Assembly: GCF_000315625.1 (NCBI RefSeq)
Contig: NW_005434476.1
Location: 16,108-48,853, forward strand
DNA: 32,746 bases
Reading direction: 5' to 3'
DNA from: Guillardia theta CCMP2712
Taxonomy: Eukaryota; Protista; Cryptophyta
Positions 601 through 7,342 of the stretch are shown here, in pieces (positions within the stretch are counted from its first letter, which is position 1; the number at the start of each line of letters is the position of its first letter). The notes under the pieces were generated by a model that did no database searches, was not told the origin of the DNA, and worked only from the letters and a program-made list of their open reading frames with translations. Made by a program: the position numbers and the translations under genes.

Positions 601-2118
601 ATGGGGAAGTACCTCGTTCATCTCCTCTCTATCCTCCTCGTTTTCCCTTCCGCCTTCGGTTTCAGCTCTTTCCCTCCGTCGCTGGCCTCACGCCCTGGGA
701 TCGACCTAGCGTCTCATCGCGCAACCACCAGCTTCTCTTCCTCTTCCTCTTCCTCTTCCTCTTCCTCCCTCCATGTTCTTCGCCAAACCCCCTCGTCCTC
801 GGTCTTCGAGTCCTCCCTTGAGCCCGGGCAGCAGAGCAAGCCGAGGCCTTGGAAACTCCTGCACATTGTGGAGCTCGCGAACAAGACGAGCGCCATGGGC
901 TGGGCGTCAGCCCGGGAGGACAGCGTGGGAGCGAGGGACAGGGACGGGACGTGGGTGCTGAAGAACGAGGAAGCGATGGAAGAGCTGAAGGCGGCGATGA
1001 AGGCGGCGATCCCCTACGCTCCCTCCTGGTCTTGGATCAACCAGTCGCCAACGGCACTAGAGGTGACGGTGGAGGAGACGGAGGGGGCGGAGGTAAAGCT
1101 GCTGTTCCTTCCTCCCGGTCAGTCTCTCCCTCCCTTTGAGTACCCGACCGGCACCGTCGTCCTGCTCAAGACGCTCTTCGGTCGCTGCGACGTGCGGCAG
1201 ATGCTCGGAAACCCTCGAGGACGCGCGCCGATGCGGGAGGCGGTGAGGACGGCGGTATCGGAAGAGGAAGTGTCCTTATACCTCGGAGGACCCTGCCGGA
1301 TTTACGGGGAAGCAACTCTGGAGAAGTCATGCTGCGTGCTAGAGGTAGCGCTGATCCCAGCGCTCAAGATCACAGGCATGCACGGGTTCGTGGAGGAGGA
1401 GAGCTACGGGCCTCTACCCTCCTCCCTCCTCCTCGACCGGCGGCACATGGAGAGTCTCCTGACTGCTCCAGGGTTCCCCGGGTATGAGGAGATGAGAGGA
1501 GGGAGAGGAGAGGTTGGAGCAGAGGAGGAGGAGGAGGAGGGAGAGTCGTCGAGAGACATCTCATCGGTGGACCTGGAGGGGCTAAGGACGAGGATCGGAG
1601 GGCTGGAGGAGGAGCTTGAGGCGATCGTGAGGAGGGCGTTTGCGACGAGGAGGCTACCGAGGGAGGCGATGAGAAGGTTGGGGGTCAGCCACGTGAAGGG
1701 GATGCTGCTCTACGGCCCTCCAGGGTGCGGGAAGACGCTGATAGCGCGGGAGATCGGGAAGCTGCTGAAAGCTCGCCCGCCTAAGATCGTCAACGGGCCC
1801 GAGGTGCTAGACAAGTGGGTGGGGGAGGCAGAGAGGAACATCCGGTCGCTCTTCTATGAGGTGAGGGGAGGAGCATGGAGGGTGGGGAGGGAGAAGGGAG
1901 ATAGGGAGGAGGAGCAGGAGCAAGAGGAGGCAGGAGGAAGGAGGCAGGAGGCAGGAGGCAGGAGGCAGGAGGCAGGAGGCAGGAGGCAGGAGGCAGGGAC
2001 GGCTGACATGTTGGGTCAGGCAGAGAACGAGTGGCAGGAGTTGGGCGACAAGTCGGCCCTGCATCTCATCATCTTCGATGAGTTTGATGCCATTGCGAAA
2101 CCTCGTGGGATGTTGCGG
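601..2118 (+). CDS. NSF/Sec18-like AAA+ ATPase with signal peptide, Ser-rich transit peptide and N-terminal degenerate ADO/PCO-like cupin; 3' end lost in gap
   Basis: Exons 601-1860 and 2020-2118 (intron 1861-2019 GT..ctgac..AG; next donor 2119). Walker [27 protein letters not shown]-typical [25 protein letters not shown], Walker [14 protein letters not shown]-terminus [24 protein letters not shown]. Confidence 0.85.
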
Positions 2119-2219: not shown

Positions 2220-3075
2220 NNNNNNNNNNNNNNNNNNNNNNNNNNNNNNNNNNNNNNNNNNNNNNNNNNNNNNNNNNNNNNNNNNNNNNNNNNNNNNNNN
2301 NNNNNNNNNNNNNNNNNNNNNNNNNNNNNNNNNNNNNNNNNNNNNNNNNNNNNNNNNNNNNNNNNNNNNNNNNNNNNNNNNNNNNNNNNNNNNNNNNNNN
2401 NNNNNNNNNNNNNNNNNNNNNNNNNNNNNNNNNNNNNNNNNNNNNNNNNNNNNNNNNNNNNNNNNNNNNNNNNNNNNNNNNNNNNNNNNNNNNNNNNNNN
2501 NNNNNNNNNNNNNNNNNNNNNNNNNNNNNNNNNNNNNNNNNNNNNNNNNNNNNNNNNNNNNNNNNNNNNNNNNNNNNNNNNNNNNNNNNNNNNNNNNNNN
2601 NNNNNNNNNNNNNNNNNNNNNNNNNNNNNNNNNNNNNNNNNNNNNNNNNNNNNNNNNNNNNNNNNNNNNNNNNNNNNNNNNNNNNNNNNNNNNNNNNNNN
2701 NNNNNNNNNNNNNNNNNNNNNNNNNNNNNNNNNNNNNNNNNNNNNNNNNNNNNNNNNNNNNNNNNNNNNNNNNNNNNNNNNNNNNNNNNNNNNNNNNNNN
2801 NNNNNNNNNNNNNNNNNNNNNNNNNNNNNNNNNNNNNNNNNNNNNNNNNNNNNNNNNNNNNNNNNNNNNNNNNNNNNNNNNNNNNNNNNNNNNNNNNNNN
2901 NNNNNNNNNNNNNNNNNNNNNNNNNNNNNNNNNNNNNNNNNNNNNNNNNNNNNNNNNNNNNNNNNNNNNNNNNNNNNNNNNNNNNNNNNNNNNNNNNNNN
3001 NNNNNNNNNNNNNNNNNNNNNNNNNNNNNNNNNNNNNNNNNNNNNNNNNNNNNNNNNNNNNNNNNNNNNNNNNNN
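2220..3075. other. Assembly gap (N run)
   Basis: 856 N. Confidence 1.
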
Positions 3076-4571
<1,496 letters not shown>

Positions 4572-5712
4572 TCTGCTCCTCACTTGTCAGAGCTTTAACA
4601 CTTTTCAACGATCACTACTCGGTACAGGAAACGAAAGTCGTCGAGCACAAGATCTGTGTTCCTGTCCCTTCGTTTCCCTATCAGCGAATAATTTCTTTCA
4701 TTATGAAGATACGAAACTAAATCACTGCATTGTAACTATTTCATAACTCCTGATCTCGACCAAACATTCAAATTGAGTATTCCGAGCTTTTGCGGTCCTT
4801 TGAGTTTTCTTCCGATTGGCTCTATCTATATCACTTCATTTCTCGTCTTCTCGTCTCTTGACTTGATTCTCTGTCCTCCTCTCTCTCTACCATCTTCTTC
4901 TTCGTTTCTTCCATCGCCTCCTCCTCCCTCCTCTTCCTCCTTCCCTTCGCAACATTTTCCTCATTCCCCCCCCACCAAACACTACCTCCCCCACCTCTTC
5001 CCCCAACACTACCCCCACCCCAGAAATATTCTGAGTACCCCTGACCCTACCCTCATTTGTCACTATATTGACCCCTACCTGGTCACTACCCCCTTCAAAT
5101 TCACCCACCCCTACCCCCTAATATTCTGCTCTCCCCAACATCAAATTCCCCAAAAACCCCAAACAAGTGGAACCAAGGAGCCGGTAGACCAGAGATGGGG
5201 TAGGGTGGTGCTACTTGGATGAGGGTCATTGGGGTGGGGGTACAGGAAGTAGGGTATTTTTTCAGGTCGAGGTAGGGGGTGTACAAGGACAGGCGTAACC
5301 AAGGAGTAAAAAGGACCCGGTGGGTGGAATCTAGGGGGGGTAGGACATGGTGGGGTGGTTCTCAGAAAGAGCGAATGCGCGGGCTTTGAGGTGAGAAGGA
5401 GGGAGAGGGGGAGGGAGGAGGAGGAGGAGGAGGAGGAGGAGGTGGTGGTGGTGGTGGTGGTGGAGGAGGAGGAGGAGGAGGAGGGAACAGCAGCAGATAG
5501 CATGCTGATTGTAAGCATCAATAGGAGATATCAGTGAAAACAAAGCAAGCTACTGCTGCTGTCTGCAGCAAGCAAAATGTAAGCATGGCATGCAGCCGCA
5601 GCCGCTGATGCAAACTTAGAGTAAAATTCAATGGACATCCCTGTAGAAGCTCTCCTGTTCTCGACAACTAATCCTCTCTTACCTAGATGTGCAAGTAGGG
5701 ACAGCGTCAAGA

Positions 5713-7342
5713 ATGTCACAGGCGTTGCAGAGCGTGAGCTCTGTGGCGAAGCAAATTGACGAGAATGTGAAATCATTTCTTGTGTTGATTCAAAGTCTTG
5801 AAACTGAGGGGAAAGCAAAGGAAGAGAACGTGAAGAAGTACCAACAGCAGGTCATCCAGCTGCAGAAGAGTGAATCTAAATATCTGGCACGGATAAAGAA
5901 CCTTGTGGATGAGAACACGAGCCTGCGGATGCAGGTAGGAGAGAAGGACGACTTGATTCGTAAGTATCAGGATGACATGGAGAACATGAATGCAAAGTGG
6001 AAGTCCATCCTGAATCAGTACCACTCGATCAAAGAACAGATGAAGGCGGTGAAGAGCTCCATCTCCAAGAGCAAGACAAGACTCCTGAGCAGGGGAGAGG
6101 TAGCGGACATCGAGAAGAACTGCGATGAATTACAGAAAGCTGCCAATGACGCTTCGAAACAAGTGGAAACAAGTGCATTCCAGAAGCCTCAGCCAAGCAC
6201 CATGGAAAGGAGGGGGGAAACGGCTAGTGCAGACGTTCAGCATGGAGGGACTCTTTTCACTTCACCTACACGAAGTCCAGCTGCGGACAAGTCCTCTGCG
6301 TCGTCAAACAATTCAGCCAAAAAGAAGAAATCCTTGCGACTCAGGAGAAGTCTGGACTTTGAAGGCAAGCAACCCTCTAGGCCTGCGGGGGCAGCAGCAA
6401 CAACAACAGCAGTAGCAGCAGCAGCAGCAGCAGCTCATTCACAAGAGAATATTGGCTCGTCGGTCGATCAGCATGAAGAGTTGCTCCGCTCCTCACAGGC
6501 TGCAGAGGCTGATGCAGACAGAGCAGCAGAGGCTCAAAGTAATGCTGAGATAGTTGTTGCCGAAACTCCCCCAGAAGTCGACTACAACCCTTCACAGAAC
6601 TCTCCTATACTCATCAGGCGGAATGAGAAGTCAAAATGTGCAGAGGTGACCAACGATGTAGAGGAAGATGTTGGTCAAGAAAGCTGTGTGTCCTTCACGC
6701 ATGGCGGAATGGAGCCGAGTGCCTCTCCTCGCATCCGAGATGAAGATCATGATTCCTTCATGGATGAGGCAGACTCGGACAATCGCCAGGTACAAATCTC
6801 TCAAGGACAAGCGCATCAGGAGTCAGCTAAAGCACAAGAAGCTGCCAGTGCTCCCCATCATGACAAGAAGAGAAAGACTTGGGACCTGCAAGACCAGCCT
6901 GATGGTAAAGTCAGCCCAGCAAAGAGTGGAGGTGTGGTGTACAAGTGCAGAACCGTTGATCGGGAGGGCAGTAAGAACTCTCGGTATCAGCAACATCCTG
7001 AGCTGGAGGAGAAGACAAGGAGTGAAGGCAGCAGCAGAGGCAAGCCAGCTGTTCTAGTCAACTGTGTCACTCGGAAGAAGGCGGAACGAGCTGACCTCAG
7101 AGGTTTCACATGCGACTGCTGCGACAAGTTCTTTGGAAAGGTTCGAGGATCCTTTTTGTTGCTCGTTTTCTTCACCCTTACCGGAATGTCTTTCTGTCCA
7201 GGTGTCTGAAGGATCATATGACATGCCCAAGCAACATCTCTGCCAGCAGTTTTCCCGTCATCGGTATCAGTTTTCTCCCCCTAAGACGCCGCCAAGCTTC
7301 TGGAGGATCGGCTTCACTCAGTCACAGCCTATAGATGATTGA
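5713..7342 (+). CDS. COM1: CtIP/Sae2/COM1 DNA end-resection protein
   Basis: N-terminal coiled coil, long low-complexity linker, C-terminal TRKKAERADLRGFTCDCCDKFF (CxxC) and FSRHRYQFSPPKTPPSFWRIGF (RHR motif). Exons 5713-7140 and 7202-7342 (61-nt intron). Start codon uncertain; an upstream exon is possible (acceptor-like ctaat..cctag near 5686). Confidence 0.9.

Follow-up and report, generated by a model that had tools for sequence, protein, structure and literature searches.

A predicted ADO/PCO-type cupin without its iron ligands, joined to an NSF-D1-like AAA module in a presequence-bearing protein of Guillardia theta and other algae with complex plastids

The described proteins closest to the one reported here are, for its N-terminal part, the thiol dioxygenases 2-aminoethanethiol dioxygenase (ADO) and plant cysteine oxidase (PCO) and, for its C-terminal part, the D1 domain of the N-ethylmaleimide-sensitive factor (NSF). 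In the plant cysteine oxidase AtPCO4, iron is bound by a conserved triad of histidines (His98, His100 and His164), the carboxylate of Asp176 has been proposed to hold the amine or the thiol of the N-terminal cysteine, and, among the single His-to-Asp replacements of the ligands that were tested, H164D completely abolished the activity (PMC13485640). The PCOs localise to the nucleus and the cytosol (PMC10092093). Here we describe a nuclear gene of the cryptophyte Guillardia theta CCMP2712 whose product carries, on one and the same chain, a targeting presequence, an iron-less domain of the ADO/PCO fold and a motor-competent AAA module of the classical type. The gene starts at position 601 of the window, by which we mean the whole stretch of 32,746 nucleotides that was analysed (contig NW_005434476.1, positions 16,108 to 48,853, assembly GCF_000315625.1), and all its features given below lie on the + strand.

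The N-terminal domain and its lost iron site

Behind the presequence, residues 79-300 of the product (835-1500) correspond to an ADO/PCO-like domain of the thiol-dioxygenase fold, made of N-terminal helices followed by a double-stranded beta-helix barrel, and the core of this barrel, which holds both cupin motifs, extends over residues 164-255 (1090-1365), as delimited from the translation and from the hidden Markov model (HMM) alignment to PCO4. It is in this core that an initial annotation, made from the sequence alone, had recognised a cysteine-oxidase-like cupin deprived of its metal ligands and fused to an NSF-like ATPase. The translation returns its three quoted peptides exactly, as residues 164-255 of the 601-1860 reading frame, and the PCO sequence that it had cited is close to the real PCO4 and PCO5 sequences.

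The sequence comparisons converge on the same family. In Pfam, PCO_ADO (PF07847) is the sole match outside the AAA families, with scores of 11.9-16.8 bits and an E value of 7e-4 for the best member; the gathering cutoff of 27 bits was reached neither by the G. theta protein nor by any of the relatives scanned. A search by protein language model placed PCO_ADO and cysteine-dioxygenase clusters at the top. When a profile built from six close relatives was compared with the PDB, the four best rows were PCO5 and PCO4; with a profile of 37 diverse relatives the five best rows were all PCOs (PCO4, PCO5, PCO2), the lowest E value being 5e-4 for PCO4, with an alignment that covers both cupin motifs. 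Taken alone, these sequence methods yield a PCO/ADO signal that is weak but consistent, and it is the modelled structure that settles the question.

The AlphaFold2 model of the domain, calculated from the family alignment of 37 sequences, reached a predicted local distance difference test score (pLDDT) of 93.1 and a predicted template modelling score (pTM) of 0.91. Submitted to Foldseek, it retrieved first PCO4, PCO5, ADO and PCO2, with E values from 3e-10 to 4e-8, and next the cysteine dioxygenases. The ranking by VIA-align was of the same kind: ADO obtained a Z score of 16.0 and PCO4 one of 15.4, each with about 178-180 residues aligned, against 12-13 for cysteine dioxygenase (CDO) and the bacterial thiol dioxygenases and about 9 for generic cupins. 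In the ESM Atlas the best cluster was 2-aminoethanethiol dioxygenase, with PCO_ADO annotated in 100% of its members. Residues from about 79 to 300 are thus predicted to form a thiol-dioxygenase cupin whose closest known structures are ADO and PCO, and the cupin fold of PCO_ADO type, which the initial annotation had put forward beforehand as a refutable prediction, is what the modelling returned. A chance likeness of the motifs to PCO/ADO is ruled out by the profile and structure searches. The idea of a diverged NSF-N or Cdc48-N domain is ruled out as well, by the cupin fold and by the lack of any Pfam match to PF02359 or PF02933 (CDC48_N, CDC48_2) in the G. theta protein or in the complete relatives.

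The spacing of the motifs is that of PCO/ADO, as the alignment to PCO4 confirms, and the iron ligands have been replaced, all three of them, as first noticed. Counting positions along this alignment in 37 aligned relatives, the column of PCO4 His98 is occupied by F179 in G. theta and holds a histidine in 0 of the 37 relatives and an arginine in 16; that of His100 is occupied by Y181 and is a histidine in 22/37; that of His164, the third ligand position, is occupied by R233 (1297-1299) and is a histidine in 7/37 and an arginine in 27/37. The first two positions belong to the F179-E180-Y181 stretch at 1135-1143. None of the 37 relatives retains more than one histidine of the triad. The fourth position to be considered, that of PCO4 Asp176 (Asp206 in human ADO), is E248 in G. 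theta (1342-1344), with a glutamate in 30 of the 37 relatives and a glutamine in the remaining 7/37, and it is the best-kept polar residue of the barrel across the family.

The relics of the triad differ from one subfamily to another: in alignment A2 (columns 170-172 and 241) one group has a histidine at the second position together with an arginine at the third, and another has a tyrosine, phenylalanine, tryptophan or leucine at the second position and a histidine at the third. These differing relics suggest an independent decay from an ancestor with three histidines. Overall, this is the pattern of a pseudoenzyme that descends from a thiol dioxygenase of the 3-His type and whose pocket has been kept for a role other than iron chemistry.

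The same columns bear on the opposite possibility, namely that catalysis persists and that the domain, tethered to the ATPase, works as a thiol dioxygenase or as some other oxygenase with a non-canonical metal site. The second histidine preserved in 22/37 and the third in 7/37 relatives, the proximity of Glu180, Tyr181 and Glu248 in G. theta, and two cysteines that are invariant in the cryptophyte-like clade could be invoked in its favour. It is opposed by the fact that no relative combines more than one of the three ligands, by the variation of the relic between subfamilies, by the absence of an alternative set of polar residues conserved family-wide, and by the inactivity of AtPCO4 H164D (PMC13485640), and we regard a persisting catalytic function as very doubtful.

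The AAA module and the conservation of the fusion

The cupin is followed by an acidic low-complexity linker (1501-1593, residues 301-331, delimited on the translation), within which the alignment to NSF begins at about residue 316. From there on, the same exon encodes an NSF N-D1 linker and a D1-type AAA domain: the segment resembling the N-D1 linker and the first half of the AAA domain occupy 1594-1860, according to Pfam and to the alignment with a red-algal NSF D1, in which 133 residues of the G. theta protein show 59% identity. The AAA module with the segment preceding it is 54-62% identical to canonical NSF D1, and a complete relative compared with the PDB found NSF D1 as its best match, with an E value of 3e-88 and 283 bits in a single stretch. 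The Pfam AAA family (PF00004) is matched with an E value of 2e-11 by the partial G. theta exon and of 1e-34 by the relatives. By motif reading, Walker A lies at 1714-1737, the aromatic motif of pore loop 1 (KWVGE) at 1813-1827 and Walker B, with its Asp-Glu pair, at 2068-2088 in the second exon; the three are intact in G. theta and are kept in most of the family. The protein is a member of the classical AAA family.

The complete relatives, of 590-690 residues (about 650), contain one AAA domain and one AAA lid, after which comes a short basic tail rich in tryptophan and leucine; Pfam found no D2 domain in any of these full-length sequences. The tail is present after the lid in many full-length members and in several subfamilies (P0003, P0005, P0038, P0110-P0114, P0060 and P0047). 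It looks amphipathic and stands in the place of D2, and it may be a membrane anchor or an element of ring assembly.

In a tree of the AAA modules, the 16 D1 sequences of canonical NSFs cluster in a clade of their own, which has a support of 100 in the approximate likelihood ratio test (SH-aLRT) and contains none of the 28 members of the family. This tree was rooted on D2, an outgroup whose branch is far too long for the deeper branching to be trusted, and the paraphyly of the family around canonical D1 that the rooted tree displays is for that reason not credited. Since the family has neither NSF-N nor D2 and falls outside the canonical D1 clade, the protein is NSF-D1-like but is not an NSF. 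Of the cupin-NSF fusion announced by the initial annotation, the location of both parts on one polypeptide stands, as they share the open reading frame of a single exon, but the partner has to be redefined: judging from the relatives, it is a single D1-like AAA domain with its lid, devoid of NSF-N and of D2.

These observations weigh on the idea of a functional NSF paralogue which would disassemble SNARE-like complexes for vesicle traffic in the plastid or in the periplastidial compartment. The 54-62% identity to canonical NSF D1 speaks for such a paralogue, and the databases call members of the family vesicle-fusing ATPases. Against it, the cupin replaces NSF-N, the domain that binds SNAP-SNARE complexes (PMC3646813), CDC48_N and CDC48_2 are not matched in Pfam, the full-length relatives are deprived of D2, the domain that mediates the hexamerisation of NSF (PMC5070193), and the canonical D1 clade leaves out every family member. 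We find this function improbable for the proteins described here.

An exhaustive HMM search with the profile of the N-terminal domain through 1.84 billion representatives retrieved 74 proteins at E <= 1e-3, and in many of these a Walker A motif lies some 140-300 residues beyond the point where the cupin match begins. One of the 74, P0067, is a false positive, being a TPR/NB-ARC protein. A search with the AAA part of a relative, the matches of which were scanned again with the cupin profile, added 16 fusion proteins. The identified members come from a cryptophyte (G. theta), from chlorarachniophytes (Bigelowiella natans, Gymnochlora sp. CCMP2014 and Chlorarachniophyceae sp. BC52) and from ochrophytes (Tribonema minus and Mallomonas annulata), the others being from metagenomes and from run assemblies. 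The same fusion had been proposed as something to look for in other algae, and it was encountered in over 40 relatives, whose sequences come from independent assemblies and transcriptomes, with the cupin first and the AAA domain after it. Its conservation extends over cryptophytes, chlorarachniophytes and ochrophytes.

In the AAA tree, the metagenomic protein P0047 is joined to the three sequences of chlorarachniophytes (SH-aLRT 99), and the cryptophyte-like clade to other marine sequences. Another metagenomic protein, P0078 (610 residues), has the C-terminal half of an AAA domain with its lid and then a second cupin-like stretch (residues 384-506), either because the gene caller may have merged tandem gene copies or because the architecture may be repeated.

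Could the fusion be an artefact of gene prediction or assembly, two neighbouring genes having been merged? The public G. theta model is indeed disturbed by a gap, and its last 39 residues find no counterpart in the relatives. The single uninterrupted reading frame 601-1860, however, covers the signal peptide, the cupin, Walker A and the pore loop, and the order of the cupin and the AAA domain is repeated in dozens of independent metagenome, Logan and MMETSP/EukProt sequences from at least three algal groups. The single reading frame and the conserved architecture rule out such a merging, to which we leave next to no probability.

The public names of these proteins are NSF, vesicle-fusing ATPase or hypothetical protein, and their precomputed Pfam annotation mentions an AAA domain and a lid only. 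The cupin being absent from that annotation, the N-terminal domain has stayed unannotated and unnoticed. A search of the searchable literature for the fusion, for a plastid NSF-like protein of this kind or for a cupin-AAA protein found none described, which agrees with the initial annotation, to whose author no description of the fusion was known; to our knowledge, a cupin is not the N domain of any other AAA protein.

Presequence, gene structure and locus

The product starts with a predicted signal peptide (601-660, residues 1-20), whose cleavage site was placed by eye on the translation, after small residues at -3 and -1. It is followed by an extension resembling a transit peptide (661-834, residues 21-78), rich in serine, threonine and arginine and including a poly-serine run, as read from the translation and from the N-termini of the relatives. 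With this cleavage, Phe21 would be the +1 residue, and the Ser-, Thr- and Arg-rich part that comes after it would count about 57 residues. Nearly all the complete members of the family likewise begin with a hydrophobic signal peptide; the cryptophyte-like relatives read by eye have a phenylalanine, tyrosine or tryptophan at +1 in 8 cases out of 8, and Tribonema and several other members also have a phenylalanine there. The import of proteins into the plastids of cryptophytes and diatoms depends critically on an aromatic residue that is conserved at position +1 of the transit peptide (PMC3017844), and it was against this rule that the presequences were judged by eye. Because of the phenylalanine at the predicted +1 position and of this rule, the sequence suggests the plastid stroma as the location of the G. 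theta protein.

The window, a piece of nuclear DNA, is GC-rich and contains introns and many low-complexity repeats. The reading frame starting at 601 is a 100% match to a public G. theta protein of 489 residues named 'N-ethylmaleimide-sensitive factor A' (P0001), and the segment 601-2118 is the 5' portion of the corresponding nuclear gene. Exon 1 (601-1860) is free of stop codons and encodes the protein from its signal peptide through the cupin to the portion of the AAA domain that bears Walker A and the pore loop. Intron 1 (1861-2019), defined by comparing the public protein with the genome, contains a tandem repeat, in which positions 1924-2001 lie. Exon 2 (2020-2118), bounded at its end by a GT donor, continues the AAA domain. 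The remaining gene, namely the second half of the AAA domain, the lid and the C-terminal tail, is concealed by an assembly gap (2220-3075, 856 N). In tblastn searches with the complete relatives, the window was matched only up to position 2100, and the C-terminal half of these relatives found no match in the window downstream of the gap. The gap is where the genuine 3' half of the gene lies. The public model crosses it, continuing at about 3327-3443 of the window, and residues 451-489 of P0001, the last 39, match no relative; this end is probably a splicing artefact across the gap, the model being mis-spliced and truncated.

The stretch bearing the gene is contained in 15 public sequencing runs from 6 studies. 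Probable RNA contig runs contain 0.53-0.84 of its words (one contains 0.23), about 0.85 being expected for a spliced transcript, and this content is no more than suggestive of such a transcript.

Perfect or near-perfect hexamer microsatellite arrays lie at 1-57, 231-377 and 735-767, flanking the gene and within it, and the last of them is the source of the poly-serine run of the presequence. Further downstream, a reading frame at 5689-7209 (+) encodes 506 residues with a coiled-coil N-terminal part, and its Pfam matches are all below threshold (HAUS1, 22.7 bits versus a cutoff of 40).

Proposed role and comparison with known systems

The model we propose combines these elements in a ring-shaped threading ATPase of the plastid, in which the iron-less cupin would serve as the module that recognises clients or ligands, the N-termini of proteins being the leading guess; we hold this joint reading to be the probable one, with reserve. 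The protein would assemble into a ring and thread its substrates by means of its pore loops inside the complex plastid. The cupin would occupy the place that the substrate- or adaptor-binding N domain has in NSF and Cdc48, and would select the clients of the motor. It would do so by recognising the N-termini of proteins, a guess that we place first since it is in this pocket that a peptide's free N-terminus is clamped by the parent enzymes and since the carboxylate that contacts the amine has been kept. It is plausible that the cupin reads substrates for the motor, perhaps by their N-termini; the binding of peptides or N-degrons as such is purely inferred.

The main rival sees in the cupin a sensor of a small molecule or of an ion, an anionic metabolite or some other ligand, which would gate the AAA motor allosterically. 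The pocket of the family is indeed basic, with an arginine at the first ligand column in 16/37 relatives and at the third in 27/37 and a histidine at the second in 22/37, and cupins are commonly ligand-binding modules. In G. theta, however, the positions of the first motif are Phe, Glu and Tyr, and its pocket is therefore less basic; the conserved glutamate at the Asp176 position suits the binding of an amine better than that of an anion. We consider a sensor to be possible and on the whole unlikely.

Several points weigh against the role that we favour, a client-recognising cupin on a threading ring in the plastid. Once the glycine, proline, tryptophan and leucine residues of seemingly structural role are set aside, conservation across the family is limited to the Glu/Gln column and the His/Arg relics, so that the conserved residues give thin support to a shared binding site; and when the alignment is read by eye, the family lacks a conserved counterpart of PCO4 Tyr182/183, a contributor to substrate affinity. 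The C-terminus of the G. theta protein is in the assembly gap, and the lack of D2 in this species is deduced from its relatives. Finally, to judge from their presequences, the subfamilies that have almost no extension after the signal peptide could reside in the lumen of the endoplasmic reticulum or in the periplastidial compartment.

Could the complex plastids possess a dedicated reader of N-termini coupled to an unfoldase, the pocket capturing the newly exposed N-termini of imported or processed proteins while the NSF-D1-derived ring pulls on them? In this complete form the proposal is speculative, and we think it rather improbable. If so, it would be an N-degron or quality-control machine of the plastid, or a motor of protein import, and the import role would weigh most in chlorarachniophytes, in which the way preproteins are passed on to the plastid translocons has been described as unknown (PMC3542566).

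In conclusion, the conserved domain architecture described here is apparently new, both as a variation on the theme of AAA unfoldases and as a branch of the ADO/PCO fold made up of pseudoenzymes. It makes the NSF label misleading for the cupin-AAA proteins. It defines a presumably single-ring, NSF-derived AAA ATPase, equipped with targeting signals, in algae whose complex plastids are of red origin (cryptophytes and ochrophytes) or of green origin (chlorarachniophytes), and the cupin-AAA protein is a candidate component of protein homeostasis or import in these plastids. It also points to an apparently undescribed, presumably inactive branch of the oxygen-sensing ADO/PCO enzymes: a fold that grips an N-terminal cysteine seems to have found a second use, as the domain by which a machine driven by ATP would recognise its targets.

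Compared with the known systems, the N-terminal domain shares with ADO and PCO (PF07847; PDB 7lvz, 7chj, 6s7e and 6sbp) the thiol-dioxygenase fold including its N-terminal helices (Z 14-16 over about 175-180 residues), the spacing of the motifs and an acidic residue at the position of PCO4 Asp176; these enzymes differ by their intact iron triad and are stand-alone proteins, whereas the G. theta domain is fused to an AAA module and preceded by a predicted signal peptide. CDO and the bacterial thiol dioxygenases (CDO_I, PF05995) have the fold of the same cupin superfamily, and CDO clusters are among the protein-language-model neighbours of the G. theta domain, but their structural match is weaker than that of ADO/PCO; the CDO-type enzymes are 3-His iron enzymes and act on small molecules. 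On the side of the motor, NSF/Sec18 (PDB 3j94 and 9cru) has the same D1-type AAA domain and linker, with Walker A and B and an aromatic pore loop, but possesses its own NSF-N and D2, where the family has the cupin, the basic tail and a predicted signal peptide or bipartite presequence. The Cdc48 of SELMA (sCdc48) is likewise a nucleus-encoded classical AAA ATPase with an N-terminal signal sequence that is sent into a complex plastid (PMC5070193). The resemblance goes no further: it differs by its Cdc48 layout of N, D1 and D2 and by its periplastidial location, whereas the G. theta protein combines a single AAA domain with a cupin behind a presequence that fits the stroma. SELMA, with its sCdc48, belongs to the red complex plastids (PMC5070193), whereas the cupin-AAA family is also present in chlorarachniophytes, whose plastid is of green-algal origin (PMC3542566).

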